DNA from: Styela clava
Taxonomy: Eukaryota
Reading direction: 5' to 3'
Assembly (NCBI RefSeq): GCF_964204865.1
Contig: NC_135255.1
Coordinates: forward strand, 13,330,001-13,394,000
DNA length: 64,000 bases
In this document: positions 7,452 through 60,568 of the stretch, in pieces
Layout of the letters: every line of letters starts with the position of its first letter
How positions within the stretch are numbered: the first letter of the stretch is position 1
Made by a program: the position numbers and the translations under genes
Notes under the pieces: model-generated
What the model was told of the DNA's origin: nothing
Database searches by the model: none
The model's input: the letters and a program-made list of their open reading frames with translations, nothing else

Positions 7452-9195
7452 ATGAGTAAGGGTATACTATATTGGATGTTTTTGAGCATTCAATTGCTCG
7501 TCAACCAAGTATATTGCAATCAAAGAATTTGCATGCAAATTGAAAATGTCAATGCAGAAGAAACCTACCCAATTCCACCACAACGAAGTTCACAGGGTGT
7601 TCCGGGCAAACGTGGGCCACCTGGTGAAATTGGCCCAAAAGGATCACAAGGGCCCAGAGGCCCAAAAGGAATTGTCGATTATGAAAGAATGAATGCAGCA
7701 ATAGAATCAGGTAATTTAAATTAATATTGAATTCGTTATTGGTTGTAAGCATCAGTGGGGCTTGTACAAAGCCTTGTCTGAGTGGAAGATCTTGCAGATT
7801 TCCCTTTAAAGGAATATATTGAAGTTTACTTCTTATTGTATATATATATAGTTTAAATGATGATATAATGACTGTTCGTATGAATGGACTTTGTATAGAT
7901 AAACCTAAGAATGTGGTTTTGGCAGAACATCCAATAATATTCTGTTGCAAAATCTTCTCACTCATTCATTGGTATTAAATTGAAATAAGGTATCCCTAAC
8001 ATTGATTCATTTAAAAATTTAGTTTGTATGATTTATACTATTAGTTCAGCGACCCATACTTTTATATGTAACTTGTTGCAGTGATAAATGATCTGCGGAC
8101 AGAAACGGAAGAGAAGATGAATAAAACCATGAATGATCTTCAGCAGAGGATGGGTAATAGTCGACTAAACTATCAATTATGTAAAACTGTTTTGTTAACA
8201 TTACATGATGAATTTTTTGTCAATGAGTTCTCAAACCTAAAATGCAAACTGGAAACATAAAAATTGTTGGGCAAATAAAATTCAGAATCCAGAATTCCCA
8301 ACATGAATTTAATTCATTTTTAAATAGAGCTAATTAAAAATTTCATTTTCTAGATAAAACAGTCAACTGTGAAGTCCTTCACAAAAATAAATGTTATCGG
8401 ATGATACTTCGTGGAACCACAATGCATTTTGACCAAGCAACACAAGCATGTAGAGATATTGGTATGAATATTGGATACATTGAAGATGAAACACATTACC
8501 AAAAAATAGCAGAGTTAGTCAGATCAAAATCAACATCATCTGGGACAGGATACTGGACAGGACTATTGTACAAAAACTCAGTGAGTATTTAAATTTGATT
8601 CATAACGAATATGGTGAACCAGCAAATATTTATCATTTCTATCACATTAAACTATCATTGTCTTATCTCGAATTAGGCTCAGAGCATAGTGCCAAACGTT
8701 AGGAATACGCTTGCCACAACACCTCAGATTACCCTGCGTGGGTTGGATGGTCCGATCATGTGTGGGATAACTATGTACAAGATAATTGCTGGACTTCTCG
8801 CTTCCATAGGGTGGTTCACATAACCGCTGGTCAGTTACAGCTTCCTTCACTGTCAAGTTCATGCATCAGGAAACTGGCCAACTAATCCCATACCCAACAT
8901 GACTGGTAACCGTACAAGAGGCTGCGGTTCCCCATATCATTATTAAGTCGCCTTATCGTCTCACCCTTGATACATATGTAACTCCTATCCTATCTATTTT
9001 AGCAACTTGTGACACTTTCTGGAAATCCATCACCGTTCATTAAATGGTATTCGGGTACACCCAGAAGTGGTGAGCAAAACAAAAATGTGTACATTTATGT
9101 CAGGAAAGATACAGGAAGTGAAAAACCACGGCATGGATAACAACAATCCAACACTCACACTACCTGGAGTGTTATGTCAAATCATGTATACTTAA
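7452..9195 (+). pseudogene. Collectin-like gene copy A (collagen + neck + C-type lectin); 1-nt frameshift in last exon
   Basis: GT-AG exons 7452-7710, 8082-8153, 8363-8580 (alternative in-frame acceptor at 8354), 9003-9195 with compatible phases. Signal peptide MSKGILYWMFLSIQLLVNQVYC, 9 Gly-X-Y, neck INDLRTETEEKMNKTMNDLQQRM, CTLD motifs C-x7-CY, FDQATQAC, YWTGL, VLCQ. An extra A in the run at 9121-9125 gives TAA at 9138-9140; this could be a homopolymer sequencing error. Confidence 0.85.
8676..8994 (+). mobile_element. Older copy of the same SINE filling collectin intron 3; also at ~24431-24754, 28563-28881, 39640-39958, 57026-57346, 60063-60368
   Basis: Colinear with 14211-14587 (cgttaggaatacg, agggtggttcac, atcccataccc, tcctatcctat). 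Confidence 0.85.
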
Positions 9196-9766
9196 GATCG
9201 GATTTGCAAGCATTGTTCACATAGTTTTATTTGTTAACTTCTCCAATCACACAATACTACAATGCTAGTTATATTGTCAATATTCAAATTACATAAATCG
9301 TATGGTGCCCTTGCTTACAAAATTCCATTTTTTTTATTATTTTATGATTTGATCATTATCTTGCTTGATATCAATCACATATCAAGTGAATATGGTCAAA
9401 ATTAATGTTGTGTTTTTTTGGTACTGGCAACAAATATATGAATAATTAAAAATTAAAAAAGTATGGTCGAAATAAAAGATAGAGATGGGAGAAGCATATT
9501 TGATTTGTAAAGTACGGTAGTAGTTTTGCGGAAAACATCAAATTTTCATTTCCTGGCAGTCGAAGGATTAATTGACTAATTATTTGATTAATTCCAATAC
9601 TATACCTGTGTAGCAGATAAGCTGTCGCCCTTCTTCACCAAAACATCTGCCCATATTATAGAAATATCAGTCACTCCCTTTTTGATCTGAGTTAGCGTTT
9701 CCTCATTTATTGACAGTTTTTGTATCGCTTTAGTCATAGTTTTACACAAAAACCTGTAAAACCAAG

Positions 9767-9823
9767 AAACTCATTCAAACTCATTGAAAACTCATTCAAA
9801 CTCATTGAAAACTCATTCAAACT
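9767..9823. repeat. 21-bp minisatellite (aaactcattcaaactcattga) x ~2.6, unit 1 only
   Basis: Direct inspection; replaces a longer intronic stretch seen in units 2-4. Confidence 0.7.
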
Positions 9824-12889: not shown

Positions 12890-13645
12890 AAACTTGTGGC
12901 ATTAAGGAGTTAGAGGGGTAGCAAACCAACTCCTGGCTAACTAGAATGCTATTTGTTTAAATGGGTTCATGCTGTTCCCCTACCTTGCCTGTGACCCTGA
13001 AGGCGCCCAGAGATCTTGCTTGGGCCCGACGTTATTCTGTATTTTTATCAATGATTTCCCCCACAGCTTCACACTATTTTCAAAATTGTTCGCTGATGAC
13101 ACAAACCTTCATGATAGCGACGACAAGTCTCCGGATGTGCTTGAGTCCAGAGTGAACACTAAAATACAAAAAAGTAGCAAATTGATAAAACTTAACAAAC
13201 TAACATTGAATGTTGAAAAATCAAAAACTATGCTATTGCGGTAGATGCTGTATCGGCTTAGGTGTTTCACTTCAATTTCAACTTTGTGCATGGTTTACTT
13301 TGTCTTGTTTCAGTCTCATTTGCAATATGGATTTGTAGCTTGGGGATCAGCTAAGAAAACCATACTACGTCGAATCGAGATAATTCAAAACAGCGCTATG
13401 CGTGCTGTACTCTTTGCTGAGCCAATGTCAAAAATAAACCCCCACTACCATAAGATGCAACTAATCAAAATGGCAGATATTTATAAAAGCGAGGTATTAA
13501 AACTCATGCACCAGCACCATAAAACTGCCTACTGCATTTTGTCAAACAAACCAGTTGGCAGTTGCCAGTGTACACTCTTGTGCAATTCGGTCCGCTGCCA
13601 ATAGCCCATACTATGTGCCTCGCTATTCCTGTATTCCACCAATCA
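12890..13645 (+). mobile_element. Degenerate CR1/L2-type RT fragment
   Basis: LGPTLFCIFINDFP..LFADDTNL, NKLTLNVEKSK, SHLQYGFVAWGSA, IQNSAMRAV, with stops and frameshifts. Confidence 0.85.
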
Positions 13646-14210: not shown

Positions 14211-14587
14211 CGGGCTCGGCGGTGTGGCTCATTGTGCTCAAAGTGACTATAAACTTAGCGACTTATAGTCGCTTTGATCGTGCTAAGCGTTAGGAATACG
14301 CTCGCCCCCGCATCTCTGATTACTCTGCATGGGTTCGCAGGTTCGAATCCCATGCGGGATAGTTATGTGCGGGAGGATTGCTGGACTCCTCGCCGTCGTA
14401 GGGTGGTTCACGTAACCGCTGGCCGGTTACGGTTCCTCTACCATCAAGTCCATGCTTCCGAAACAAATAACTAACTAATCCCATACCCGACATGGACTGG
14501 TAACCGGACGAGATGCCGTGGTTCGCCATATGGATATGCCGTCTTATCGGCTTTCCTCTCCCCCGGGATAAATATATAAATCCTATC
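14211..14587 (+). mobile_element. tRNA-derived SINE (best-preserved copy; 38-bp insert in the A box)
   Basis: A-box-like TGGCTCATYGTG, B box GGTTCGAATCC, internal hairpin GTAACCG..CGGTTAC, 3' stem-loop GCCG-TCTTAT-CGGC, TCCTA tail. Confidence 0.85.
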
Positions 14588-14606
14588 GTGCTTCTTCCCA
14601 TCCACA

Positions 14607-15512
14607 CGCTTTGGTCCAAACCCAGGTTCGCGGGCCACATGTGGCCCACCGCTCCATAATCTGTGGCCCGCGTCGCATTTGCGCCAACGTAGACAAAAAA
14701 TCGTATTTGGTGTTGTTTCGTCAAAATAAAAATAACCGGAAAAATCTTTTGAGATATTGTTACATCACTAATTTAACTGGATTGACTAGTGTTATGGCTA
14801 GTGAAGTTGAATAATAATGTGCTTGGCTAGTCTAAATTGTCAACTGGCTTTCTATTTTTTTTTGGTCGTGAATATCTGCTAGCAAAATAGGCTTCATAGA
14901 AAACTAAAAATCAAATGAGTTGATTATGCATGATAACTAAACATTATTGTAATGGCCTAACAATATAATTCCTGCGGGTGTTTTTTTTTTGCAACCAGTC
15001 TTAACAGTAATACAAAAAATGCTGCCTATATATCAGAAAATTTAGTAATTACCCTTCTGTATCTCAAATTAGGTAAAATTCGGTAATCAGTCAATTTGCA
15101 GTTATTTGTAGGTTATTTTGTAAATATGAGTTTGAAAAGAAAGCTGGCCAATTTAAAGAGATATTTGACCTAATATAGGAAGGAAAATACCACAATGTTT
15201 GCTTAAATATGTCTGCAAACTGTGTCGGTAACAATCTAAAACGGCATTTTCTCATTATGTCTCTTTATCCGTTATGAGGTGTTCGAAATATTATACTAAA
15301 TGTAGATATAGTAAGATTTTTGCACGTTTTAGTGAGTTTTTTGGTGGTTGTTGCATGTTTCAGCTTGATAAATGACAAATAATGATCAATGTGATTTGAA
15401 CAATAAAAGCGTTTGTTTTGTACTGTTCAACTATTCTTGGCACTACTGTGACCCGCGAACATTACAAAAATATTAGTGTGGCCCGCGAGGCTGACAACTT
15501 TGGACCACCCTG
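14607..15512. mobile_element. hAT (Charlie-like) MITE with decayed left TIR; paralog ~45990-46891
   Basis: Subterminal GTGGCCCGCG/CGCGGGCCAC motifs at both ends; right TIR TTTGGACCACCCTG; left remnant TGGTCCAAA. Confidence 0.65.
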
Positions 15513-23310: not shown

Positions 23311-24955
23311 ATGAGTAAGGGTATACTATATTGGATGTTTTTGAGCATTCAATTGCTCGTCAACCAAGTATATTGCAATCAAAGAATTTGCATGCAAATT
23401 GAAAATGTCAATACAGAAGAAACGTACCCAATTCCACCACAACAAAGTTCACAGGGTGTTCCGGGCAAACGAGGACCACCTGGTGAAATTGGACCAAAAG
23501 GATCACAGGGGCCCAGAGGACCAAAAGGAATTGTTGATTATGAAAGAATTAATGCAGCAATAGAATCAGGTAATTTAAATTAATATTGGCCGTAAGCATC
23601 AGTGGGGCTTGTACAAAGCCTTGTTTGAAGTGGAAGAACTTGCAAAAATTACAGATTTCCGTATATAAGAATATACTGAAGTTTACTTCTTATTGTATAT
23701 ATATATATAGTTTACATCTTTTTAAATGATGATATAATGACTGTCTGTATAAATGGACCTGGTATAGACAAAACTTAATAATTGGGTTTGTGCAGAACAT
23801 CCAAGTATGTTATGTTGTGGACTTTATTCACTCATTCAGTGGTAAAATTAAAACAATGTATCACTAATTTTGATGCTTTTATAAAATTTAGTTTGTTTGA
23901 TTTGTATTATTACTTCAGCGACCCATACTTTTATATTTAATCCATTGCAGCGATAAATGAGCTGCGGACAGAAACGGAAGAGAAGATGAATAAAACTATA
24001 AATGATCTTCAGCAGAGGATGGGTAATAGTTACTAAACTATCAATTATGAACAAACATGAATTTAATTTATTCTCAAACTGAGCTAAATGAAATTTTCAT
24101 TTATCAAATATGATAGTCAACTGCGAAGTCATTCACAAGAATACTTGTTATCGGATGATACTTCGTGAAACACAAATGAATTTTGACCAAGCAACACAAG
24201 CATGTAGAGATATCCGTATGAATATTGGATACATTGAAGATGAAACACATTACCAAAAAATCGCAGAGTTAGTCAGATTAAAATCAACATTATTTCGAAC
24301 AGGATACTGGACAGGACTATTGTACAAAAACTCGGTGAGTATTTAAATTTGATTCATAATGAATATGGTGAACTACCAATTCTTCAGCATTTCTATCTCA
24401 GTAAATCATCAATGACTTATCTCAGCTTACGCTCGACGGTGTAGTGTAAAGTGCTGAGCGTTAGGAATACGGTTGCAACAGCACCCCTGACTATCTTACA
24501 TAGTTTTGCAGGTCCAAATCCTGTGTGGGATAATTATGTACGAGATGAATGCAGGAATCCTCGCCTCCATAGGGTAGTTCACATAACCGCTGGTCGGTTA
24601 TGGCTTTCTTCGTCATTAAGTTCATGCATTAAAAACTGGCTAACTAATCCCACACCCAACATGACTGTTACCGGACGAGAGGCTGCGGTTCCCCATATGA
24701 TTATTAATTCGCGTTATCGCCTCTCCCGGGATGAGTGTGTAACTCCTATCCTATTTATTTCAGCAACTTGTGACACTTTCTGGAAATCCATCACCGTTCA
24801 CTAAATGGTATCCAAGTACACCCAATAGTAGCGGGCAAAAAAAAAATGTGTTCATTAATGTCAGGAAAGATACAGGAAATGTAAACCACGGCATGTATAA
24901 CAACTATCAAACAGTCACACAACCTGGAGTGTTATGTCAAATCATGTATACTTGA
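23311..24955 (+). CDS. Collectin-like protein copy B, intact, 246 aa
   Basis: Exons 23311-23569, 23951-24022, 24117-24334, 24764-24955 (259+72+218+192 = 741 nt), all GT-AG, open frame. Signal peptide, collagen GVPGKRGPPGEIGPKGSQGPRGPKGIV, neck, CTLD. Confidence 0.9.
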
Positions 24956-26426: not shown

Positions 26427-26458
26427 CGTGGGAAACAAGTTTTTTGCAATTTCCCACG
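26427..26458. promoter_or_regulatory. Inverted CSL/Su(H) paired site (SPS) upstream of collectin C
   Basis: CGTGGGAA-16 nt-TTCCCACG. Variants at 7102-7133, 22960-22992, 26054-26084, 37213-37244, 58141-58172. Confidence 0.55.
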
Positions 26459-26629: not shown

Positions 26630-29081
26630 ATGAGTAAGGGTATACTATATTGTATGTTTTTGAGCATTCAATTGCTCATCAATCAAGTATGTTGCAATCA
26701 AAGAATTTGCATGCAAATTGAAAGTGTCAATGCAGAAGAAACGTACCCAATTCCACCACAACGAAGCTCACAGGGTGTTCCGGGCAAACGTGGACCACCA
26801 GGTGAAATTGGCCCGAAAGGGCCACAGGGGCCAAGAGGCCCAAAAGGAATTGCTGATTATGAAAGAATTAATGCAGCAATAGCATCAGGTAATTTAAATT
26901 AATATTTATTTGCTATTGGCCGTAAGCATCAGTGACGCTTGTACAAAGCCTTGTTTCGAGTGGAAAATCTTGCAAAAATTAGATTTCCCTTTATAAGAAT
27001 ATATTGAAGTTTACTTCTTATTGTAAATATATATATATATGCTTTACATCTTTTTAATTGGTGATATGAAGACTTTCCGTATAAATGGACTTGGTATATA
27101 CAAACTTAATAATGGGGTTTTGGCAGAACATCCAAGTATGTTGTGTTGCAAACTTTATTCTCTCATTCATTGAAAAATTAAAAAAAATAGTGTATCACTA
27201 ATTTCAATGTTTTTAAAAAATTTAGTTTGTTTGAATTGTACTATTACTCCAGCAACCCATACTTTTATATTTAACTTATTGCAGCGATAAATGATCTGCG
27301 GACAGAAACGGAAGAGAAGATGAATAAAACTATGAATGATCTTCAGCAGAGGATGGGTAATAGTTACTAAACTATAAGTTATGCAAAACTGTTTTGTTAA
27401 CATGACATGATGAATTTTTTGTCAAGGAGTTTTGTCTCAAACATAAAATCAAATGCAAACTGGAAACATAAAATTGTTTGGCAAAAAAGATTCAGAATCT
27501 AGAATTCCCAACATGAATTTAATTCATTTTTAACCCTTTCCATGCGATTTTTATTTTTTATTAAATAATCGTATTTGCTACGCCGACTTTATGCATTTGT
27601 ACCCCCACAACTAATCGATCGACTAACGAAAAAGTAATGATCCTCTGCTGCCCACTGACGGCTTGTTGGAAAGCTTATTTAAAGAGCTTGCAATTGGCGA
27701 TTAAAAAAAATTTTTTTTTTAAAAGGGGTGGTCTGAGTCACAAACCGGATAGAAAAAAGGCATTTTTTTTTCTTGGGTGTTGAAACTTCAAACCGTGATA
27801 AAAAATAGAAATATTTGCTAAATCCTTTACTGTTACCGCTTCTTGGTTGGCAAACAATGCATAATATTGCTGTAGCAATTTCGTTATCTAACTCAAAATA
27901 CTTTGGTAGATGGAAGGGATAATTTGTCTTCTATCACTACCCAAAAAACACCGAAATTTGCATAAATTTCAAAAACACTCCATCGTTCCTCCGCAAATAA
28001 AACTCCCATGGTAAACGAAAGCGAGATTTATCGTCGCTTATGTTAATCTCGAAGAAGACTTTTTATCAATAAACTAAAACCCGGAAAAACTAGACCAACA
28101 GTTTGCGACCGATTGCTAAATAAAACAGTGGAGTACATCAACGTACCCGCCGCAATCTAGCGAGTTTTGTCGTGGGTACGTATACGTGCCCACCGCACGG
28201 AAAGGGTTAAACGAAGCTAAATGAATTTTTCATTTTCTAAATATAATAGTCAACTGCGAAGTCATTCACAAGAATACTTGTTATCGGATGATACTTCGTG
28301 GAACACAAGTGAATTTTGACCAAGCAACACAAGCATGTAGAGATATTGGTATGAATATTGGATACATTGAAGATGAAACACATTACCAAAAAATAGCAGA
28401 GTTAGTCAGATCAAAATCAACATCATCTCTTACAGGATACTGGACAGGACTATTGTACAAAAACTCAGTGAGTATTTAAATTTGATTCATAACGAATATG
28501 GTGAACCAGCAAATATTTATCATTTCTATCACATTAAATTATCATTGACTTATCTCGGATTAGGCTTAGAGCATAGTGCCAAACGTTAGGAATACGCTTG
28601 CCACAACACCTCTGATTACCCTGCGTGGGTTGGATGGTCCGATCCTGTGTGGGATAACTATGTACAAGATAATTGCTGGATTCCTCGCTTCCATAGGGTA
28701 GTTCACATAACCGCTGGTCAGTTACAGCTTCCTTCACCGTCAAGTTCATGCATCAGAAAACTGGCTAACTAATCCCATACCCAACATGACTGGTACCCGT
28801 ACAAGAGGCTGCGGTTCCCCATATCATTATTAAGTCGCCTTATCGCCTCACCCTTGATACATATGTAACTCCTATCCTATCTATTTCAGCAACTTGTGAC
28901 ACTTTCTGGAAATCCATCACCATTCACTAAATGGTATCCGGGTAGACCCAATAGTGGTGAGCAATACAAAAATGTGTACATTTGGGTCCAGAAAGATACA
29001 GGAAGTGTAAACCAGGGCATGTATAACTACATTCCAACACCCCTACGACCTGGAGTGTTATGTCAAATCATGTATACCTAA
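26630..29081 (+). CDS. Collectin-like protein copy C, intact, 246 aa
   Basis: Exons 26630-26888, 27285-27356, 28250-28467, 28890-29081; open frame, GT-AG; piggyBac-type MITE in intron 2. Confidence 0.9.
27534..28206. mobile_element. Non-autonomous piggyBac-type element (673 bp) in collectin C intron 2
   Basis: TTAA-CCCTTTCCATGCG ... CGCACGGAAAGGG-TTAA; single TTAA at the equivalent site in copy A (~8320). Confidence 0.9.
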
Positions 29082-37554: not shown

Positions 37555-40158
37555 ATGAAAAAGGGTATACTATATTGTATGTTTTTGAGCATTCAATTGC
37601 TCGTCAAACCAAGTATATTGCAATCAAAGAATTTGCATGCAAATTGAAAATGTCAATACAGAAGAAACGTACCCAATTCCACCACAACAAAGTTCACAGG
37701 GTGTTCCGGGCAAACGAGGACCACCTGGTGAAATTGGACCAAAAGGATCACAGAGGCCCAGAGGACCAAAAGGAATTGTTGATTATGAAAGAATTAATGC
37801 AGCAATAGAATCAGGTAATTTAAATTAATATTGGCCGTAAGCATCAGTGGGGCTTGTACAAAGCCTTGTTTGAAGTGGAAAATATTGCAAAAATTACAGT
37901 TTTCCCTACATAAGAATATATTGAAGTTTACTTCTTATTGTATATATATATAGTTTACATCTTTTTAAATGATAATATAATGACTGTCAGTATGAATGGA
38001 CTTGGTATAGACCAGGGATAGCGAACCACTGACCCGCGGGTCACAAAGTGACCCACCGCGTTTTATTCTTGACCCGCCAAGGCACTAATAAAATAAAAAT
38101 GCTAACATATCACTGATGAGAAGTGATAAAACCGGTCTTAAATTAATCTAACAATAACTAAACTATTATAATGTACCGTCAGTTGGTCATGACTGCGATC
38201 GCTCATATTTAAGTTGTTAATTTCCGGGCCGGTATGGTAATTTCCTAAACCTCTAATCTTGGGCGCATGTGTGCACCGTTCGTTATTCAACTATTGGCTC
38301 TGACATAACAATGCAATTGCTACTTTGCATTTTATTAGTTTCTCGCCTACAATGCCGTTGAGAAATCAAAATATTCCAGACTTGAAATAAAAACCGAGAA
38401 ATCTGAAACAACAATGGGGCAGTGTAAAAGTGCCTTAATGTGGTTGAAAGCTGATCTAAAAATATAAAACTATCAGAGTGGAATTCCCTCCAAACTCTTT
38501 GGATCCGGAAAAGAATTTGCCGCATCGTCCTAAGCGTTTTTGGCGATTCATATGCGTGTTTTCGTACTCTGATTCCATAAAATCGAGTGAAATAAAAAGT
38601 CCCCGATTAAAGTGATGCATAAGTGAAACCCAAAACTACAACAACAGCAACAGAAGCTTATAAGATTTGTTTCAGAAGTTTCTCATAGATACAAACATTG
38701 ATTAAATATATGTGACCCAATCTCTTCTGTTCCGCGATAAAAATATAATTTTTGACCCATTCATTGGAAAAGGTTCGCCATCCCTGATAGACAAAACTTA
38801 ATAATGGGGTTTGTGCAGAACATCCAAGTATGTTATGTTGTGAACTTTATTCACTCATTCATTGGTAAAATTAAAACCATGTATCACTAATTTTGATGCT
38901 TTTATAAAATTTAGTTTGTTTGATTTGTATTATTACTTCAGCGACCCATACTTTTATATTTAATCCATTGCAGCGATAAATGATCTGCGGACAGAAATGG
39001 AAGAGAAAATGAATAATGTCAACAAAACCATGAATGATCTTCAGCAGAGGATGGATAATAGTCGACTAAACTATCAATTATGTAAAACTGTTTTGTTAAC
39101 ATTACATGATGAATTTTTTGTCACAGAGTTCTCAAACATAAAATTAAATGCAAATTGGAAACACAAATAAGATTCGAATCTATAATTCCCAACAAATAGA
39201 ACTAAATGTAATTTTCATTTTCTAAATAAAATAGTCAACTGCGATGATTCAGAATCAAGAATTTCCAACATTAATATAAATTATTTTCAAACCGAAATAC
39301 CTAAATTTTTCATTTTCTAAATATAATAGTCAACTGCGAAGTCTTTTACAAGAATAATTGTTATCGGATGGAACTTCGCAAAACCAAAATGAATTTTGAT
39401 CAAGCAACACAAGCATGTAGAGATATTGGTATGAATATTGGATACATTCAAGATGAAACACATTACCAAAAAATAGCAGAGTTAGTCAGATCAAAATCAA
39501 CATCATCTATAGGATACTGGACAGGACTATTGTACAAAAACTCAGTGAGTATTTAAATTTGATTCATAACGAATATGGTGAACCAGCAAATATTTATCAT
39601 TTCTATCACATTAAATTATCATTGACTTATCTCGGATTAGGCTCAGAGCATAGTGCCAAGCATTAGGAATACGCTTGCCCCAGCACCTCTGATTACCCTG
39701 CGTGGGTTGGATGGTCCGATCCTGTGTGGGATAACTATGTACAAGATGATTGATAGACTCCTCGCTTCCATAGGGTGGTTCACATAACCACTGGTCAGTT
39801 ACAGCTTCCTTCACCGTCAAGTTCATGCATCAGAAAACTGGCTAACTAATCCCATACCCAACATGACTGGTACCCGTACAAGAGGCTGCGGTTCCCCATA
39901 TCATTATTAAGTCGCCTTATCGTCTCACCCTTGATACATATGTAACTCCTATCCTATCTATTTCAGCAACTTGTGACACTTTCTGGAAATCCATCACTAT
40001 TCACTAAATGGTATCCGGGTACACCCAATAGTGTCGAGCAATACAAAAATGTGTACATTTATGTCAAGAAAGATACAGGAAGTGTAAACCACGGCATGTT
40101 TAACTACATTCCAACAGCCACACGACCTGGAGTGTTATGTCAAATCATGTATACTTAA
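37555..40158 (+). pseudogene. Collectin-like pseudogene copy D
   Basis: Exons 37555-37814, 38974-39054, 39330-39544, 39967-40158. Lesions: +1 A at ~37606-37608 (frameshift in the signal peptide), Gly>Arg in collagen (GSQRPR), exon-2 donor GT>AT at 39055. Confidence 0.85.
38013..38786. mobile_element. Non-autonomous hAT (Charlie-like) element (774 bp) in collectin D intron 1
   Basis: TIR CAGGGATRGCGAACC; ATAGAC duplicated on both sides (6 of the expected 8 bp); empty site ggtatagacaaaac at 23761. Confidence 0.85.
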
Positions 40159-44645: not shown

Positions 44646-44784
44646 CTAGATTTATATGGAATGACTGTTATCTTTATTTGTCCATGTTTTTATAATATGC
44701 TATCACCATAATAATTTTCATCAACACTGTGGTTTACTTTGTTTCCAGTATTATTTGCTCCCGTCTGACAGAGCAAAATAACTC

Positions 44785-45969: not shown

Positions 45970-48900
45970 GTGCTTCGTCCCATCCATACGCTTTGGTCCA
46001 AACCCAGGTTCGCGGGCCACATGTGGCCCACCGCTCCATTATATGTGGCCCGCGTCGCATTTGCGCCAACGTAGACAAAAAATCGCATTTGGTGTTGTTT
46101 CGTCATAAAAATAACCGGAAAAATCTTTTGACATCTTGTTACATCACGAATTTAACTGAATTGACTAGTGTTATGGCTAGTGAAGTTGAATAATATTGTG
46201 CTTGGCTAGTCTAAATTGTCAACTGGCTTTCTATTTTTTTTTGGTCGGGAATATCTGCTAGCAAAATAGGCTTCATAGAAAACTAAAAATCAAATGAGTT
46301 GGTTATGCATGATAACTAAATATTATTGTAATGGCCTAACAATATAACTCCTGCGGGTGTTTTTTTTTTGCAACCAGTCTTAACAATAATACAAAAAATG
46401 CTGCCTATATATCAGAAAATTTAGTAATTACCCTTCTGTATCTCAAATTAGGTAAAATTCGGTAATCAGTCAATTTGCAGTTATTTGTAGGATATTTTGT
46501 AAACATGAGTTTGAAAAGAAAGCTGGTCAATTTAAAGAGATATTTGACTTAATATAGGAAGGAAAATACCACAATCTTTGCTTAAATATGTCTGCAAATT
46601 GTGTCGGTAACAATCTAAAACGGCATTTTCTCATTATGTCATCTCATCCGTTATGAAGAGTTCGATATATTACACTAAATGTAGATATAGTAAGATTTTT
46701 GCACGTTTTAGTGAGTTTTTTGGTGGTTGTTGCATGTTTCAGCTTGATAAATGACAAGTAATGATCAATGTGATTTGAACAATAAAAGCGTTTGTTTTGT
46801 ACTGTTCAACTATTCTTGGCACTACTGTGACCCGCGAACATTACAAAAATAATAGTGTGGCCCGCGAGGCTGACAACTTTGGTCCACCCTGTAGGCATCG
46901 ATGTAATATATTGTGCATAATTTTGATGAATAGGGGTATCTTCAACAGGGGAATACCCCAATTTATAAGTTTGAGTAGTTTCAGGCTCAAGGTGCGTGAC
47001 AAACTTTATGTATTCCACTTTGATATAAAATAATAATATCGCGTGCCTCTTGTGCGGAAAGGACATGCTATTAATCTTTGAAAATTCAACACTTTATCGG
47101 TATACGTAATTTTGATAAATAGGGGCATCCTTGACAGGGAAGACCCCAATCTATAGATTCGAGTATTTTTATAGGCTCAAAGTGTGTGACAAACTTTATT
47201 TATTCCACTTCCAGGTAATTTTGATAAATAGGGGTATCTTCAAACAGGGAAAGATCCCAATTCCTAAGTTCGAGTAGCTCTATAGGTTCTAAGTGTGTGA
47301 CAACTTTATATATTCCGATTTGACATAAAATCGCGTACCTCCTGTGCGGATACCGGTTTTATGTCATATTACCATTTTCAATGAGTTGCATTTACTTTTA
47401 AAAATCAGTTGAATAAAACAAATCAGCCGGTTCCGCGTTCATTATTTTGTTTCAGTTAGTATTGTATTATCTACCACTAGAGATTCTTGTATCGATACCC
47501 AACACCACTAAAATTTATGAGAATGTGATAGATACTTAGTTTATACGCGTAGAACGGCGACGCTACATTTTGTGAACTGGTAAAACTGTCGTCGATTGTG
47601 TCGTGCAGTCCTATTCCCTAACTAAAGTGGAGCCCCAGTTTGAAAAGCCCCTTTCTAGACATTGACAGGGAGAAAAAAAAAGGATGAAAAAAGGGATATG
47701 GATAAATATCAAAATCTTATATCGACATAAAAACTATTCTTTGACAGCCTTGCATTTCTAAATCTGGACAAAATGTAAGGAGATCCAAGTTTGATAACAA
47801 AATGCAGACAAAGTTACGCAAATGTATTTATTAAAAAAAGTAATAATATGCCATCAAAAGCATTTTTGCTTGCAGTGAGTGTCCAAGTGAAAAATGGAAT
47901 ACAGAAACGGGGCAAAGCAGTGACGGAAACATAAATACAAAGACTGAAAAAATAAAAACTGCTGAAGATCAAAAAAATCTTGGATCTTCTGAACTTCCAA
48001 ATTTGCAGAAAATGAGATATTCTAGACAAGGATCTTCTCACGAACTCGACAATAATTGAGCATCATTCACAGGAACAAATCGTCTGCACAAAACTTTGGT
48101 TTAGGTCGGAAGGAATCATCCAGTTTCTTGACAATAATCTGGTGCAGAATTGATCTTCACAAACACTTTCCACCAATTCGTTAAGGTTACACTTAAACTA
48201 AGCAAGTAGTCCTACAATACACCAAGTACTGCATAAAACAAAACAATATTAATTGGCATCTGCAAAGCCCATGAAGGAGCCGAGATGCGAAAATAACAGT
48301 TCATGTTTGTTGTAGAACGGAACCTACTGCAGTATTAAACAGTACTTACTGCAAGTTGAGAAGAACGGGTACTGTAGAATATGTGAATCGAAGATATAGC
48401 TGAAAAAAAATAAGTGGCAAAGATGTGTAGAAAAGATTAATGTTATGTTATGAAAGTTTTTTTTTATATTCTGCTCTATCACAATGGAAGAAAAGTTTGA
48501 TTAGGACAAATACAGGCAACCACCCTGCTGTATCCTAAGGGCGCCCACTTCCGAATACCCTACATTTCTATTCTATTCTGATGCAAAATATACTGTATAT
48601 ACAAAAATGTAAAATATTGAGATGCTTAATATAGTAACAAAGATAACCAACCACTCTCCCCTTTTTATTGCAAGAAATTAACTTAAGGAGTTTTGGGCAG
48701 CAGACATCCTGCATCCATCTGTAACCATGATGAACATCGAATCTTTTCCGGAATAAAATCTTCAGGTTTCGCATATGTTTTCAGAGTGGTGAGATACTGC
48801 AGTAACAGAGAAAACGTATATTAAAACAAACAAATAGTAACAACATTGTGTAGAATGGAAAGGAAAATAGAAAAAAAATTACGAATCAAACAATCCACAA

Positions 48901-52391: not shown

Positions 52392-52399
52392 ACCTAGAG

Positions 52400-52710: not shown

Positions 52711-55238
52711 GTATGTATGTATGTTTATTCGTCTCGTAAAAGCAATATAAAAGAGTAAGTACTTATAAATACTGAAGACGGGATGTATGCACAAGACCAT
52801 ATTGGCCTAAAACACAGATGTGTGGCATACACCCCTTTGATTTATATAAATTATAATAGGGTAAATCAAATATGTACAATATGGTCCTTTATACAGGCAG
52901 TTGTGCGAGGAGGGTGGGTGGATGCGGTAACAGGGATATGGGTGGAGTGTACAAAACTGTTTGTACAAAGGAGTTTGTTAGACAAAACAACATCTATAAA
53001 TAGAGACACAACACAACATGAAACGCAATGCATATGAATATAGTAATAAAAAAATTTAAAAAAAAAAAAAAAAAAATTAAGAATTTGGATGAATGTACAA
53101 TACCATTGAGTGATGATACCACATACTATAAAACGCGGGAATGGTCAAGTTTAAAGGGTGTGTACATATATGGTATGCACCACTCAAGGGCGACAGTGTT
53201 ATAAGTGGTCTATGGCTGTTCTGGCCAAAATGTGACCCTACAGGTTTTGGCAAAATATGATAAAAAAGGTATGTATCAAATGACTCACTATTATAAGGTT
53301 TTTTTTTGAAATTCTGGATTCAGCCAAAAACAATGAAGTTTCAAAAAAAAAAAATTAATAAAAAGCATTTCCACAAAACCTATTATGGTTGCATTTCAGC
53401 CAGAAGATTAGAAAGGTATAAAGGTACAGTGGGATAAGGAATGATAAGTTATAAAGAGAAGCCATTTTACCATGTCATGGATTTTCCAATGTAAATTAAA
53501 ATAATAAAATTATATGGTATCCTGGGATGAGCAGAAGAAAAAGTGTGATTCGGAGATAGGTAGCAACAATGGAAATAAATTGAACAGCATGCTACTCAAA
53601 CAAAAACCATTGTCCCTACTATTTGAGCATTCTATCTATAACCTAAATTGCTGTGCTTTTGTTGTTGTCTAATTACGCATGATAATGAAATTAGAATGGT
53701 GTGCTAGTTATTAATTCAGTCGATTGTTCTATATTGAATCCGGGTGAAGTATCCTGTGGAGTTATTGAAATTGTCAGCTGGTCTATGGTGACTGAAGAGG
53801 AGGACAGTTTCCTGATAGTTCATTCAATCCAAATAATCAACAGCTCTCTCTTTCAGTGTTGAACTGACCTTAAAAAAATAATCTCCAAACAGTAACATGT
53901 TCAAAGCAGAGAAAATTGCTAATATGATGATAATATATATTGTTTAAGTTTGGAACGAAATTCTGAGTTCGATTTTGAATTTTTGATGTCATCGGGTAGG
54001 GAATTCCAAGCTTTTGGTCCACATACTGCGATTGATTCTTGTGAAATACTTTTACTGACAAATGGAATAAAAAAATTATCTTTATTTCTGCTGTTTGAAT
54101 TTGGGTTTGCTTGGAACAGGCTGTTCAGGCTGGACGGAAGCTCTCCAATGTGACAAGAGAACATCATATTACATAGTTCGAATTTAGCTAAATCCACAAC
54201 TCGTAGTAGCCTATGCTCTTTAAATAAGTCATCAATTTTTTCGCGATTACCTCTATGAAAAACTCTTCTAATAAAGCGATTGCAAACACTTTGAATTTTT
54301 TTGAGAATGGACGATTGGCGATGAACATAAGCTGAGGCACAATAACGAATATGGCTTTCTATCAGAGAGTGGTATAGAGATATTAAACAAGATGTATTTA
54401 AGTAGTTGGCTATTTTCGTAATGGCACTAAGAGACGACCTTGTTTTCGATAGAACCATATTGGTGTGTTGTTTCCAAGACAATTTATCATCGATCATTAC
54501 ACCCAGAAAGCGAGTCTGATTAACTCTTTCTATATTTATTCCATTTAATTCCAAATTTTGTTGCAGAGTTGGACACTTTTGCTTCGGCGTGCTAAATATC
54601 ATATATTTAGTTTTATCGACATTAATAGTGAGTTTGTTCGCAGACAACCAAGCTTGAATATTTTCTAAGTCGGTATTTGCCTTGGTCAAAAGTTCATGCA
54701 AGTTTTTGCCTCGAAGATATGGCGTTGAGTCATCAGCAAAAGTATGATATCAGAGTGAAGAAGAGAATTCGGAAAGTCGTTAATAATGATTGAAAAACAT
54801 AATGGAGCCAAAATAGAACCTTGTAAAGTACCTACAGTCAAATTACAGTATGTGCTAGATGCTACATCATTGTATATAACTACTTGTTTCCTTCCTGATA
54901 AGTAGCTTTTAAACCAATTATAACTCTGACCTCTAACGCCAATATGGTGCAATTTGGCTAGTAATATGTCATGGTCAATACTATCAAATGCCTTGGAAAG
55001 GTCCAAGAACATACTGAGAGTATACTCATTCTTATCAAATCCTTCTAGAATTTTACTGACAAGCAGGGATGTTGCATGAGATGTTGAATGATTTTGACGA
55101 AAGCCAAATTGTTGTGAATAAAAGAAATTTTTTTGGTCTAGGAATTGGTTGAGTCGTTTGTACATAATTTTTTCTAGAATTTTTGAAAATGCGGGAAGTA
55201 AGCTGATCGGTCGGTAGTTTTTTACATCTTTTGCATGA
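52711..55238 (-). mobile_element. 5'-truncated non-LTR retrotransposon (CR1/L2 group), RT ORF2 with one frameshift, 3' UTR and microsatellite tail
   Basis: NYRPISLLPAFSKILEK, QFGFR, FLDLSKAFD, QGSILAP, FADD (frameshift at ~54740), then a continuous ORF to the stop at 53919. On the minus strand it ends in AATAAA-(CATA)3-C at 52729-52711. Confidence 0.9.
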
Positions 55239-55788: not shown

Positions 55789-57547
55789 ATGAGTAAGAAT
55801 ATACTATATTGTATGTTTTTGAGCATTCAATTGCTCGTCAACCAAGTATATTGCAATCAAAAAATTTGCATGCAAATTGAAAGTGTCAATGCAGAAGAAA
55901 CGTACCCAGTTCCACCACAACGAAGCTCACAGGGTGTTCTAGGCAAACATGGACCACCTGGTGAAATTGGCCCGAAAGGGCCACAGGGGCCAAGAGGCCC
56001 AAAGAGAATTGTTGATTATGAAAGAATGAATGCAGCAATAGAATCAGGTAATTTAAATTATTATTTATTTGCTATTGCCCGTAAGCATCAGTGGGGCTTG
56101 TACAAAGCCTTGTTTCGAGTGGAAGATCATGCAAAAATTACAGATTTCCCTTTATAAGAATATATTGAAGTTTACTTCTTATTGTAAATATATATATATG
56201 CTCTACATCTTTTCATTTGATGATATGAAGACTTTCCGTATGAATGGACTTGGTATATACAAACTTAATAATGTGGTTTTGGCAGAACATCCAAGTATGT
56301 TGTGTTGCAAACTTTATTCACTCATTGATTGAAAAATTCAAAAAAATAGTGTATCACTAATTTCGATGTTTTTAAATAATTTAGTTTGTTTGATTTGTAC
56401 TATTAGTTCATCGACCCATTTATATATAACTTATTTCAGCGATAAATGATCTGCGGACAGAAACGGAAGAAAAGATGAATAAAACCATGAATGATCTTCA
56501 GCAGAGGATGGGTAGCTAATAGTTACTAAACTATCAATTATGTAAAACTGTTTTGTTAACATTACATGATGAATTTTTGACGAAGAGTTTTGAAACATAG
56601 AATTAAAAGCCAACTAGAAACATAAAAGTTGTTTGGCAAACATGATTTAGAATCTATAATTCCCAATAAACAGAACTAAATATATTTTTCTTTTTCTAAA
56701 TATAATAGTCAACTGCAAGTCTTTTATAAGAATAATTGTTATCGGATGGAACTTCGCAAAACCAAAATGAATTTTGACCAAGCAACACAAGCATGTAGAG
56801 ATTTTGGTATGAATATTGGATACATTGAAGATGAAACACATTATCAAAAAAAGCAGAGTTGGTCAGATCAAAATCAACATTATCTAGAACAGGATACTGG
56901 ACAGGACTATTGTACATAAAGTGAGTGAGTACTAGTATTTAAATTTGATTTATAATGAATATGGTGAACTACCAATTCTTTATCATATATATCTAATTAA
57001 ATTATCATTGATTTATCTCAGCATAGACTCGGCGGTGTAGAGCATAGTGCTAAGCATTAGGAATATGCTTGCCACAGCACCTCTGATTACACTGCGTGGG
57101 TTCGCAGGCCCTATCCCTTTGGGGATAACAATGTACGAGATCATTGCTGGACTCCTCGCTTCTTAGGGTGGTTCACATAAATGCTGGTCAATTACGGTTT
57201 CCTTCACCATCAAGTTCATTCCTCACAAAACAACTAACCCCATACCCGACATGGACTACTAGCCGGATGGGAGGTTGTGGTTCCCCATATGATTATTAAG
57301 CAACCTTATCATCTCCCCCTTGATACATATGTAACTCCTATCCTATTTATTTCAGCAACTTGTGACACTTTCTGGAAACCCCTTATCGTTCACTAAATGG
57401 TATCCGTACAAACCCAACAGTGGTGAGCAATACAAAAATGTGTACATTTGGATAATGAAAGATACAGGAAATGTATACCAGGGCATGGATAACTACATTC
57501 CAACATTCAAACAAGCTGGAGTGTTATGTCAAATCATGCATACTTAA
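55789..57547 (+). pseudogene. Collectin-like pseudogene copy E
   Basis: Exons 55789-56047, 56440-56511, 56709-~56920, 57356-57547. Two 1-nt deletions in exon 3 (~56717 and ~56851), Gly>Arg in the last collagen triplet, and the upstream promoter block of the other copies is absent. Confidence 0.85.
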
Positions 57548-58815
57548 GATCGGATTAGCAAGATCGGATTAGCAAGCATTGTCCACCGAGTTCTTTTCGT
57601 TAAGTTCTCTGATCACACAATACTACAATGCTAGTTAGGTTGTCAAATTACATAAAGCATATGGAGCACCTGATTACAGAATTCTATTTTATTATTATTT
57701 TATGATTCGATTATTATCGTGCTTGTGATCAATTACGTTACCTGCGATGTGACTATGGTCAAAATTAATATTGAATTGTGTTTTTTGTTATTGGTGACAA
57801 ATATATAAATAATAAAAAAGTATATCATTGTCGGCATATATAAAAGATAGAGATGGGAGAAGCATATTTGATTACTAAAGCAGTTGTTTTGTGGAAAACA
57901 GCAAATTTCAATTACATATCAGTCAAACAGACGATTATTCTTAATACCATTAAATATTCAGGAGGAAATTCGATCTGAGCAACTTCATGGATACTCTGAA
58001 ATAAAGGAAATTCGAGATGCAAAATACTATTTCGAACCTACAAATGACTGTTTTCGGTATTTCATCATTTTTTAACACGAAAATGTCAAGTGTTTTATTG
58101 AAAACAACACCAAAATTGCGGAAATGTCATAGCAAAATAATATGGGAAACAAGTTTTATGCAATTTCCCATGGTAACCCAATACATCCAATATATTCATG
58201 GCAAAATATTATCACCTTACACATTGGAGTTTACTGCTTGAAAAAACACAACACTTGAAAGCTAAACAACCGTGTCAATTCAATATAAATACTTCCAGTA
58301 TTCAAAATTTACGAGCTAAACCAAAGAATACTCTTGATGCAGTAGGTTGGCGAGCATAGATGTATTTGTCTTAACTTTGTAATTAACAATTAGTAAGATA
58401 AGTTTCATTTAATTGGAATTTATAGAAATCAAATCTCATTTATCGATTATGTTTTGAACAGTTAAAAACATACTCGACATCGTAGCATTGATAACCTTCT
58501 CGGGCTTTAATCCCCAATGTTGGATACAAATGTACGAGTGGCGGGTAAGCCAATTCATATAATGATGGTTAGTTACGGCTTCCTCCTCCCTTAAATTTAT
58601 GCATCTGAAACTAAGTTGTTCCTCTATCCATTCCCATGCCCAACATATATACAAATCCTAACCTAAGTAAAAACCGTAAGTAAGTAATTGGAAAAGTACA
58701 AACGCTACAACAAAGTGCAATAATCTATGGCAGAAATGTATGTAATCAATTTATTCTAAGCCAGCTGTGTAGACTGCATTTCAATTCTAATGCTAGCTTT
58801 AAACAGGCGTTAAAT

Positions 58816-60568
58816 ATGAGTAAGGGTATACTATATTGTATGTTTTTGAGCATTCAATTGCTCGTCAACCAAGTATATTGCAATCAAAGAATTTGCATGC
58901 AAATTGAAAATGTCAATACAGAAGAAACGTACCCAATTCCACCACAACAAAGTTCACAGGGTGTTCCCGGCAAACGAGGACCACCTGGTGAAATTGGCCC
59001 GAAAGGATCACAGGGGCCCAGAGGACCAAAAGGAATTGTCGATTATGAAAGAATTAATGCAGCAATAGAATCAGGTACTTTAAATTAATATTGGCCGTAA
59101 GCATCAGTGGGGCTTGTACAAAGCCTTGTTTGAAGTGGAAGAACTTGCAAAAATTACAGATTTCCGTATATAAGAATATACTGAAGTTTACTTCTTATTG
59201 TATATATATATATATATAGTTTACATCTTTTTAAATGATGATATAATGACTGTCTGTATAAATGGACTTGGTATAGACAGAACTTAATAATTGGGTTTGT
59301 GCAGAACATCCAAGTATGTTATGTTGTGGACTTCATTTACTCATTCATTGGTAAAATTAAAACAATGCATCCCTAATTTTGATGCTTCTATAAAATTTAG
59401 TTTGTTTGATTTGTATTATTACTTCAGCGACCCATACTTTTTTATTTAACCCATTGCAGCGATAAATGAGCTGCGGACAGAAACGGAAGAGAAGATGAAT
59501 AAAACTATGAATGATCTTCAGCAGAGGATGGGTAATAGTTACTAAACTATCAATTATGCAAAATTTTTTTGTTAACATTACATGATGAATTTTTTGTCAA
59601 AGAGTTTTGTCTCAAATATAAAATCAAATGCAAACTAGAAACTTAAAAATTGTTCGACAAATATGATTTAGAATCTTAGAATTCCCAACACAAAATTAAT
59701 TTTTTTTCAAACAGAGATAAATGAAATTTTCATTTTCTAAATATAATAGTCAACTGTGATGTCCTTCACATGAATAATTGTTATCGGATGATACTTCGTG
59801 GAACCAAAATGAATTTTGACCAAGCAACACAAGCATGTAGAGATATTGGTATGAATATTGGATACATTCAAGATGGAACACATTATCAAAAAATAGCAGA
59901 GTTAGTCAGATCAAAATCAACATCATCTCTTACAGGATACTGGACAGGACTATTGTACATAAACTCAGTGAGTATTTAAATATGATTCATAACGAATATG
60001 GTGAACCAGCAATTTTTTATCATTTCTATCACATTAAATTATCATTGACTTATCTCGGATTAGGCTCAGAGCATAGTGCCAAGTTTGAGGAATACGCTTG
60101 CAACAACACCTCTGATTACCCTGCGTGGGTTGGATGGTCCGATCCTGTGTGGGATAACTATGTACAAGATAATTGCTGGATTCCTCGCTTCCATAGGGTG
60201 GTTCACATAACCACTGTCCACTGGTCAGTTACAGCTTCCTTCACCGTCAAGTTCATGCATCAGAAAACTGGCTAACTAACCCCATACCCAACATGACTGG
60301 GTTCCCCATATCATTATTAAGTCACCTTATCGTCTCACCCTTGATACATATGTAACTCCCATCCTATCTATTTCAGCAACTTGTGACACTTTCTGGAAAT
60401 CCATCACCATTCACTAAATGGTATCCGGGTACACCCAGAAGTGGTGAGCAATACAAAAATGTGTTCATTTATGTCAGGAAAGATACAGGAAATGTATACC
60501 AGGGCATGGATAACTACATTCCAACACACAAACAACCTGGAGTGTTATGTCAAATCATGTATACTTAA
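58816..60568 (+). CDS. Collectin-like protein copy F, intact, 246 aa
   Basis: Exons 58816-59074, 59460-59531, 59750-59967, 60377-60568; open frame, GT-AG. Confidence 0.9.

Follow-up and report, generated by a model that had tools for sequence, protein, structure and literature searches.

About 30 tandem copies of a gene for a collectin-like protein lie in the Styela clava genome, spread over about 340 kb (C6 13.267-13.606 Mb), and they probably form a germline-encoded repertoire of soluble, collectin-format recognition molecules for microbes or other non-self. The window analysed here is a 64-kb stretch of the same contig; it holds six plus-strand copies between positions 7452 and 60568, a sample of a far larger array.

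A tandem array of four-exon genes

Intact copies share a single gene model, with four exons, GT/AG junctions and 246 codons, and 17 of the 30 array copies are intact under this model; about 40% are broken. The encoded protein is ordered as a signal peptide, two N-terminal cysteines, nine Gly-X-Y triplets, a helical neck and a C-type-lectin-like head. A database protein of exactly 246 aa, in which exon 3 corresponds to residues 112-183, is identical to array copy g462. RefSeq labels the array genes only as 'uncharacterized' and has no name for the family, and no paper on it was found in the literature searched. Database searches for orthologs found no relatives of the family outside S. clava, which means that substitutions cannot be polarised. 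The copies and other elements in the window are as follows.

7452..9195, plus strand: copy A, exons 7452-7710, 8082-8153, 8363-8580 and 9003-9195 (by exon alignment); pseudogene or assembly slip
23311..24955, plus strand: copy B, intact, exons 23311-23569, 23951-24022, 24117-24334 and 24764-24955 (ATG, GT/AG throughout, 246-codon frame)
23455..23535, plus strand: collagen-like stalk of copy B, 9 Gly-X-Y triplets including Pro-Gly-Lys-Arg-Gly-Pro (from the translation)
26630..29081, plus strand: copy C, intact, exons 26630-26888, 27285-27356, 28250-28467 and 28890-29081
28941..29051, plus strand: hypervariable segment of copy C exon 4 (codons 18-54 of the exon, residues 201-237)
37555..40158, plus strand: copy D, pseudogene, exons 37555-37814, 38974-39054, 39330-39544 and 39967-40158
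53919..55165, minus strand: LINE reverse-transcriptase remnant between D and E (Pfam RVT_1, E=1.8e-20)
55789..57547, plus strand: copy E, pseudogene, exons 55789-56047, 56440-56511, 56709-56924 and 57356-57547
58816..60568, plus strand: copy F, intact, exons 58816-59074, 59460-59531, 59750-59967 and 60377-60568

The first-pass annotation had described six paralogs with a near-constant scaffold. All six were located, and every peptide string quoted from them was found in its place, but A, D and E are broken, which leaves B, C and F as the intact copies. One base too many in an A-run (about 9121-9125) shifts exon 4 of copy A by +1, so that the string MDNNNPTLTL is read in a different frame from SGTPRS. 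Because this is the sole lesion of copy A and lies in a homopolymer, it may be a sequencing error. Copy D carries several lesions: exon 1 is frameshifted by +1 at about 37606, a Gly of the collagen repeat has become Arg, the exon-2 donor has changed from GT to AT (39055-39056), and there are insertions of 9 nt in exon 2 and 0.8 kb in intron 1. Copy E has lost 1 bp at each of two places in exon 3 (about 56717 and about 56852), and the end of that exon and its donor are altered. The exon-4 frame is still open in both D and E, and is open in 27 of the 28 exon-4 copies of the array. The hypervariable-segment codons begin at 24815 in copy B and at 60428 in copy F. Intron 2 of copy C contains a high-copy repeat insertion (about 27440-28239), and copy B has a near-twin, g532, outside the window. 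The birth-and-death evolution proposed at first reading is evident across the array from pseudogenes, mosaic copies and transposon insertions, the LINE remnant between D and E being part of this evidence.

B- and C-type copies are transcribed and spliced. RNA-like contigs match exons 1, 2 and 4 of copy B, with the exon 1/2 junction seen, and exons 2, 3 and 4 of copy C, in each case at 97% identity or more. Three RNA-like runs, from three studies, cover the exons only and have GT..AG joints between exons 1 and 2; a DNA-like run shows neither.

Stalk, neck and head of the protein

The N-terminus is hydrophobic (the signal peptide was judged by eye), which points to secretion, and is followed by Cys22 and Cys27, kept in all intact copies. 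The collagen region consists of nine unbroken triplets (residues 49-75), is constant in length in all intact copies, and is very short for a stable triple helix; its Pfam Collagen score is below the 27.2-bit cut-off both on the exon of copy B (23.1 bits) and on the full-length protein (20.3 bits). At residues 51-56 nearly all copies have the Pro-Gly-Lys-Arg-Gly-Pro sequence, a candidate lysine motif of the MASP-binding type in which Xaa is Arg, whereas the Xaa of such stalk motifs is usually aliphatic (PMC2856262).

In the model of a full-length member the neck helix spans residues 77-111, forming a 35-residue coiled coil. Prediction of the homotrimer gave an ipSAE of 0.55 (best control, 0.32), with contacts agreeing in at least 53% across runs and partner pLDDT of at least 84; the mark applied to such predictions is reached by 21 of 30 solved homo-pairs and by 0 of 23 single chains. 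The predicted interface covers residues 75-110 with heptad spacing and includes none of the hypervariable residues. A neck-mediated homotrimer is therefore supported by prediction, although its score may owe something to solved collectin necks already known to the predictor.

The head is modelled with a pLDDT of 83-95. Foldseek gave CL-K1 trimer, SP-A, tetranectin and SP-D as its best matches, with probability 1.0, and VIA-align of the neck plus CRD gave tetranectin as the best structural match (Z 17.2, rmsd 2.1, 136 aligned), with Z scores of 16.6 for CL-K1, 15.9 for SP-D and 15.7 for MBP. Pfam Lectin_C is just sub-threshold (21.3 bits against a cut-off of 22.6). In the alignment, the Ca2+ site 2 ligands EPN/QPD and WND are absent from every copy: the EPN position reads K/T/R/A/L-P-N/R, with Glu in none, and the WND position reads x-N-Y/N/H in all. 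The only cysteines in the head are Cys113-Cys121, the long-form pair, and Cys140/Cys241. The inner CTLD disulfide is absent, with Thr233 at the second Cys position, from the family and from its S. clava relatives.

Are these proteins collectins, as the first reading had it? The stalk-neck-head layout and the CTLD fold bear the name out, giving a collectin-like architecture with a non-canonical head. Because EPN/QPD, WND and the inner disulfide are missing everywhere and both Pfam domains are sub-threshold, the proteins are not collectins in the strict sense, and the loss of these ligands and of the disulfide suggests that target binding probably proceeds without classical calcium-sugar chemistry. 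They share with vertebrate collectins (MBL, SP-A, SP-D, CL-K1/collectin-11) the domain order, a superposable neck and head and a predicted neck trimer, with a stalk lysine motif that may be of the MASP-binding type; they differ from them in these head features, in sub-threshold Pfam scores and in having only 9 triplets in the stalk. Moreover, vertebrate collectins are few, conserved genes, whereas some 30 paralogs make up the tandem array, and their ligand face is hypervariable. Tetranectin likewise has a trimerising helix directly before a long-form CTLD, and its ligand need not be a sugar; unlike the array proteins, it lacks a collagen stalk, retains every CTLD disulfide and is encoded by one conserved gene. 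Membership of the tetranectin group was rejected on the collagen region and the missing disulfide.

Selection and reassortment in exon 4

Exon 4 differs from the rest of the gene in its pattern of substitution. Under M0, ω is 0.29 for exons 1+2 (p=8e-8 below 1), 0.50 for exon 3 and 1.68 for exon 4 (p=0.027 above 1), with identical values from IQ-TREE, and tree-free nonsynonymous to synonymous counts are 70:16 in exon 4 against 73:51 in exons 1-3 (p=5e-4). Site models, run with M0 branch lengths and a single scale factor, favour M2a over M1a for exon 4 (2ΔlnL=37.8, p=6e-9), with 37% of codons at ω=4.5; M8 is likewise favoured over M7 (41.6) and over M8a (41.1). Twenty-one exon-4 codons have a posterior >0.8 for ω>1 under M2a, and the last third of the exon has ω=4.0 (p=0.006). 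The same models found no selected sites in exons 1+2.

Could this be relaxed constraint in a decaying family, with recombination imitating positive selection? Many copies are indeed broken (about 40%, as noted above), and recombination is frequent and inflates the likelihood-ratio test, since 2 of 8 recombination-null simulations exceeded 5.99. For the entire exon, tree-free estimates put ω at about 1.1-1.2, which is not significant: the minimal-state method gives 1.17, sister pairs have dN 0.057 against dS 0.053 (also not significant), and the tree-free tests alone therefore do not show ω>1 for exon 4 as a whole. The simulations, however, reached 2ΔlnL of at most 14.8 and ω of 0.46-0.61, far short of the values observed for exon 4. 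When exon 4 was split into three 21-codon segments, each with its own tree, M1a was rejected in every one (10.8, 8.2 and 21.8; sum p=3e-7). Relaxed constraint also predicts ω of 1 or less, evenly spread, whereas about 60% of exon-4 codons vary little or not at all (ω 0.36) and are interleaved with variable codons that have 4-7 amino acids and 0-1 synonymous variants. The strong constraint on exons 1-2 of the same genes, the almost always open exon-4 frame and the transcription and splicing of the genes argue in the same direction. We consequently disfavour relaxed constraint as very unlikely. The variability of exon 4 far exceeds what chance would give and is restricted to discrete codons, with invariant ones between them.

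The first-pass annotation had leaned on a hand count for copies B and C. Nei-Gojobori counting agrees with it, giving 16 amino-acid differences in exon 4 (22.5 nonsynonymous, 4.5 synonymous) and 9.0 nonsynonymous and 9.0 synonymous differences in exon 1, but the contrast between the two exons is confounded as evidence by mosaic ancestry. Intra-exon recombination in exon 4 is real: 83 of 300 site pairs show four gametes, and for 74% of the exon-4 differences that separate sister genes, each of the two states recurs in other copies. Divergence within sister pairs is 2.5x greater in exon 4 than in intron 3. This divergence, together with a dN that does not significantly exceed dS in sisters, points to old variants that were retained and reassorted under selection; a simple post-duplication burst was rejected on the same two observations. 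The diversifying selection originally proposed thus stands for the exon-4 sites, but not as a simple post-duplication history.

Where do the selected residues fall? Those in the long loop are 201, 202, 204, 206, 207 and 209, of which 202 and 204 align to the E and N of EPN. Those in β3 (213, 215 and 217) alternate with invariant V212, I214 and V216; residues 228 and 230 align to the W and D of WND; and the remainder, in loops, are 222-225, 231 and 234-237. As judged by secondary structure and sequence alignment, not by coordinates, the selected sites are predicted to lie in the long loop, at alternate β3/β4 residues and in adjoining loops including β3-β4 and β4-β5. This placement takes in the long loop and β3-β4 region named at first reading and extends to the loops beside it; the variable β3/β4 residues presumably point outward. 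Tandem CTLDs that do not bind sugar and that show accelerated change in the long loop and β3-β4 are known from NK-cell receptors (Ly49/KLR) and snake-venom snaclecs, which are membrane receptors or venom heterodimers and have neither collagen stalk nor trimeric neck.

A candidate recognition repertoire

In the reading we favour, the N-terminal cysteines would cross-link chains and the neck would bring three of them together. Purifying selection maintains stalk and neck, and strong diversifying selection between paralogs acts on about twenty head residues, on the distal face where ligand would bind. Head variants are reassorted among copies, and introns homogenised, by gene conversion or unequal recombination, and every paralog would come to differ in specificity. 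Through the MASP-type lysine motif of the stalk, binding might feed into complement.

Secreted trimeric CTLD proteins could instead serve in tunic or matrix assembly, food capture in the pharynx or gut, settlement or predator defence, their rapid change tracking external substrates. The uninformative RefSeq label leaves room for such roles, CTLDs without Ca2+ sites have many non-immune functions, and tetranectin, the closest structural match, is a protein-binding CTLD. We nevertheless think a non-immune role unlikely, as ω of about 4.5 on the ligand face, a large tandem array with pseudogenes and a collectin-type stalk with a lysine motif of MASP type usually mark host-parasite or self/non-self conflict, not structural proteins.

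A slightly less likely alternative is that the heads tell self from non-self between individuals, in tissue allorecognition or gamete self-sterility, and do not serve to recognise microbes. Diversifying selection on a protein-type (non-sugar) face with retention of old variants resembles allorecognition and mating loci, and the heads do lack sugar-binding ligands. The diversity measured, however, is between paralogs of one haplotype and not between alleles, and contigs of other individuals over B and C hardly differ at the hypervariable codons. A repertoire is the better fit to about 17 intact genes residing together, at least two of them transcribed in one run.

Such a repertoire might also be combinatorial, with co-expressed paralogs joining in mixed trimers or oligomers, about 17 heads yielding hundreds of multivalent specificities, and MASP and complement recruited through the conserved stalk lysine. 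Mixed trimers could form since stalk and neck are nearly identical across paralogs and the heads differ, and the open exon 4 of dead copies could serve as a donor pool for gene conversion. We regard this as an unlikely elaboration of the favoured reading.

Tunicate lectins of related kind are already known: the collagenous lectins of Styela plicata (same genus), the MBL-like collectins of Ciona and the glucose-binding lectin of Halocynthia with its MASP are humoral and have been linked to inflammation and the lectin complement pathway (PMC5465252). These have a collagenous or C-type lectin format in common with the array; compared by description, they differ in being sugar-binding and in having one or few forms, with no hypervariable array or selection analysis reported. 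Large tandem families of secreted proteins, with diversity in the binding part and a history of duplication, conversion and selection as in the array, include snail FREPs, sea-urchin 185/333, bivalve C1qDC, amphioxus and Ciona VCBPs, and prawn Rlec C-type lectins (PMC7536079). Those families rely on repeat-number variation, element mosaics, or Ig, fibrinogen or C1q heads, whereas the array has a collagen-neck-CTLD trimer scaffold whose CTLD ligand face varies by point changes. The array gives no sign of somatic diversification.

No living group is closer to the vertebrates than the tunicates, and since these lack antibodies the question arises of how their recognition becomes broad. The array offers a testable case, in which the collectin format, the starter of the vertebrate lectin complement pathway, has been amplified to about 30 genes, and a hypervariable surface, strongly selected to diversify, has taken the place of the classical sugar site. 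Should the microbial or non-self ligands prove to differ from head to head, a new scaffold would join the few diversified innate receptors (FREPs, 185/333, VCBPs and VLRs), and the CTLD ligand face would prove usable as a variable region in a chordate. Were the combinatorial reading also true, it would mean antibody-like breadth on a collectin scaffold in the sister group of vertebrates.

The gene array and its relatives

Alignment of the copies in the window, which is 33% G+C and contains no N, resolves six plus-strand copies (A to F) of one gene and yields a clean model of four exons, in which all junctions are GT/AG and the product is 246 aa. The exons are:

Exon 1, 259 nt: hydrophobic N-terminus, Cys22 and Cys27, and nine Gly-X-Y triplets
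Exon 2, 72 nt: with the end of exon 1, the helical neck
Exons 3 and 4, 218 nt and 192 nt: one half each of the C-type-lectin-like domain (CTLD)

Copies B, C and F are intact. Copy A has one additional base in an A-run of exon 4; copy D is frameshifted in exon 1, its collagen repeat is broken by a Gly-to-Arg change, and its exon-2 donor now reads AT; copy E has two 1-bp deletions, both in exon 3. Every peptide string quoted in the first-pass annotation is present in the window, and its hand counts of changes between B and C were right on recount. The two copy A motifs that it quoted together both exist, but in different frames.

How far does the array extend? An exon-by-exon search of the whole genome found about 30 copies, all on the plus strand of a single contig (C6), in about 340 kb (13.267-13.606 Mb). 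The window corresponds to 13.330-13.394 Mb, and the array runs well past both of its ends. Judged by the same four-exon model, 17 copies are intact, and the proposal of birth-and-death evolution is upheld. The array analysis drew on 60 loci (L001-L060), a few copies being represented without exon 1/2 or exon 4. In one sub-group (copies g493, g504 and g512) exon 3 has lost 18 nt in frame and with them part of helix α2; exons 1-2 of these three were not recognized within the DNA examined.

The genome-wide exon search also gave more than 100 weaker matches of the same CTLD type in further clusters. Dense clusters, which share the disulfide-poor CTLD type and are 35-50% identical, lie on contigs C18 (15.2-15.9 Mb), C9 (21-23.5 Mb), C5 (1.7-1.96 Mb) and C17 (14.8-15.05 Mb); exon-4-like matches number at least 145 genome-wide. 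At least one such relative, the database protein P0012, has a longer collagen stalk that is above the Pfam threshold. A deep search with the exon-3 peptide returned only 13 proteins among 1.84 billion representatives. The best match, P0001, is a 246-aa protein identical to array copy g462, in which exon 3 corresponds to residues 112-183; at NCBI this protein, like eight paralogs, is labeled 'uncharacterized protein [Styela clava]'. Distant single-domain relatives likewise come from S. clava, and when relatives outside the species were sought by profile and deep searches, only S. clava proteins and one Logan cluster came up.

The window also contains repeats and other recurrent sequence:

8600-8990, 24350-24750, 28490-28880, 39560-39960, 57000-57340, 60000-60370: intron-3 element
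53919-55165, minus strand: LINE reverse-transcriptase remnant between D and E (Pfam RVT_1, E=1.8e-20)

The intron-3 element is a repeat-like sequence of about 300 bp, found in all copies, whose two strands both contain long spurious ORFs; related sequence occurs outside the genes, for example at 14320-14724 and 45603-46020. It is probably a SINE-type element that predates the amplification of the array. Copy C carries an insertion in intron 2 (27440-28239); its read depth is in the thousands in all runs, DNA-like and RNA-like, and it is a high-copy transcribed repeat. Another insertion, of 0.8 kb (38012-38790), is confined to intron 1 of pseudogene D. On the plus strand, 12961-13604 and 43970-44711 contain weaker RT-like ORFs. 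Minus-strand ORFs at 4645-6733, 20534-22669 and 35491-36458 recur with every large duplication unit, and these co-amplified ORFs have no Pfam matches.

Fold and assembly of the product

P0001 was used as the full-length stand-in for fold and assembly, whereas the exons of B, C and F were searched singly and were joined only for frame checks and codon counts. Searched singly, exons gave only sub-threshold Pfam matches, and exon 4 none. Full-length P0001 fell just short for Lectin_C (21.3 bits against a cut-off of 22.6) and was also sub-threshold for Collagen (20.3 bits against 27.2). Because the Pfam domains were sub-threshold, the fold was examined directly by structure. The AlphaFold model has a confident head (residues 112-246, pLDDT 83-95) preceded by a helix (77-111). 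Its best Foldseek matches, each with probability 1.0, are the neck plus CRD of the CL-K1 trimer, SP-A, tetranectin and SP-D. VIA-align placed 136 residues on tetranectin (Z 17.2, rmsd 2.1), with Z values of 16.6 for CL-K1, 15.9 for SP-D and 15.7 for MBP.

A homotrimer of residues 74-246 was predicted at 0.55 versus 0.32 for the best control, with contact agreement of at least 53% between runs and partner pLDDT of at least 84; in calibration 21 of 30 solved homo-pairs, and none of 23 single chains, attained the pass mark. This pass may owe something to solved collectin necks that the model remembers. The predicted interface comprises residues 75-110, with heptad spacing, and includes none of the hypervariable residues. 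Taken together, the Foldseek and VIA-align matches and the predicted neck trimer indicate a collectin-like architecture. Strict membership of the collectins, as first annotated, fails: the Ca2+/sugar ligands of the EPN and WND motifs are missing in all copies (in place of the Glu stands K, T, R, A or L), as is the inner CTLD disulfide.

Selection and recombination in exon 4

Selection was analyzed in the 17 intact genes, with each partition on its own tree. Under M0, ω was 0.29 for exons 1+2 (below 1, p=8e-8), 0.50 for exon 3 and 1.68 for exon 4 (above 1, p=0.027). For exons 1+2 and exon 4, our GY94 code and IQ-TREE agreed exactly on likelihoods and ω; for exon 3 the IQ-TREE value is given, the separate GY94 fit (ω 0.80) being under-optimized. 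For exon 4, M2a was preferred to M1a (2ΔlnL=37.8, p=6e-9), with ω=4.5 for 37% of codons and 0.36 for the remainder; M8 was preferred to M7 by 41.6 and to M8a by 41.1. The diversifying selection that had been proposed for this exon is thus borne out. Site models found no selected sites in exons 1+2 and a single one in exon 3, residue 171, immediately before β2, a less certain call since it uses the under-optimized exon-3 branch lengths. The exon-4 peptide alignment has an invariant framework interspersed with positions occupied by 4-7 amino acids. The 21 exon-4 sites with posterior >0.8 (codon i being residue 183+i), placed by the model's secondary structure and by alignment, are:

Residues 201, 202, 204, 206, 207, 209: long loop
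Residues 213, 215, 217: β3, interleaved with the invariant Val212, Ile214 and Val216
Residues 222, 224, 225: β3-β4 loop
Residues 228, 230: β4, aligned with the W and D of WND
Residues 231, 234-237: β4-β5 loop
Residues 244, 245: C-terminus

Most of the selected sites lie, as first suggested, in the CTLD long loop and β3-β4 region. In canonical CTLDs this region is the ligand face, on the far side from the neck. Aligned to a solved mosquito lectin, residues 202 and 204 fall on the Glu and Asn of its EPN motif, and the alternation of 213, 215 and 217 with invariant residues is taken to mean that these three face outward.

Could recombination account for the selection result? The array copies are mosaics. 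B and F, for example, are 97% identical in the 5' half, from exon 1 to intron 2 (23274-24049 versus 58779-59558), and 83% identical in the 3' half, from exon 3 onward (24054-25123 versus 59687-60749), with the breakpoint near a deletion in intron 2 of B. Read from the sequences, this switch is direct evidence of recombination among array members. All four gametes occur in 83 of the 300 informative site pairs of exon 4. Four checks were accordingly made. First, when three 21-codon segments of exon 4 were each given their own ML tree, M1a was rejected in all (2ΔlnL 10.8, 8.2 and 21.8; combined p=3e-7), and in the last third ω for the whole segment was 4.0 (p=0.006). Second, eight null data sets were generated from the fitted M1a, the three thirds following different real trees, and analyzed as the real data were; the test was inflated (2/8 above 5.99), but the maximum, 14.8, was far below the observed 37.8, and ω was 0.46-0.61 versus 1.68 observed. 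Third, the tree-free minimal-state count put N/S at 0.23 in exon 1, 0.32 in exon 2, 0.55 in exon 3 and 1.17 in exon 4; the difference between exon 4 and exons 1-3 is significant (p=5e-4), although neither its 1.17 nor the 1.12 of the a-priori ligand-face segment is significantly above 1. Fourth, 11 independent sister pairs were picked by the similarity of their introns; their exon-4 divergence, 0.057 nonsynonymous and 0.053 synonymous, was in each case about 2.5 times that of intron 3 (0.022; p=5e-11 and p=3e-4).

Two other histories were rejected. An amino-acid burst after every duplication would place dN above dS in the sister pairs, where pN and pS are about equal. Gene conversion specific to exon 4 does not fit either, as both states occur in other copies for 74% of exon-4 differences between sisters versus 65% of those in intron 3 (p=0.23). 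Across all pairs, dN is 2.4-2.7 times intron divergence when the pair is recent and reaches a plateau at about 0.13-0.15 when it is old. At a restricted number of codons, old variants would be retained by selection, and conversion or recombination would reassort these among paralogs, meanwhile homogenizing the introns. We read the history of exon 4 as an MHC-like pattern rather than a simple post-duplication burst.

Expression and comparison with other families

Expression was assessed from contigs over window 23240-29239, that is, copies B and C. Exons are covered and introns are not in three RNA-like runs from three studies. The GT..AG joint of exons 1 and 2 is present in two of these runs and absent from the DNA-like run; in the third, loose ends match the predicted exon 1/2 junction. 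One and the same run has contigs with at least 97% identity to exon 4 of B and to exons 3 and 4 of C, so that two or more head variants are transcribed side by side, and expression of the array holds for both B and C types.

An in-frame ATG occurs 20 codons 5' of the signal peptide (window 23251-23310; equivalents at 7392 and 55747), and one RefSeq model (P0015, 269 aa) takes this start. An RNA contig end at 23305 that abuts adapter suggests that the transcript starts just 5' of the ATG at 23311; transcripts would then begin 3' of the upstream ATG, favoring the 246-aa form.

Collectin-like lectins are already known from tunicates, namely the collagenous lectins of S. plicata and the MBL-like collectins of Ciona, and a Halocynthia lectin acts together with MASP (review PMC5465252). 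Our literature search found no paper that describes, for Styela or another tunicate, a hypervariable array of collectin-like or CTLD genes. Diversified lectin families under selection are familiar from other invertebrates, examples being the prawn Rlecs (PMC7536079) and the bivalve C1qDC, FREP and 185/333 families. The S. clava array differs from these in its predicted use of a collectin-format trimer, and it has a variable surface in place of the canonical sugar site. The observation of a hypervariable collectin-like array is confirmed, and its interpretation as a diversified recognition system is partly supported; the array is a candidate for such a role in an animal that belongs to the sister group of vertebrates.
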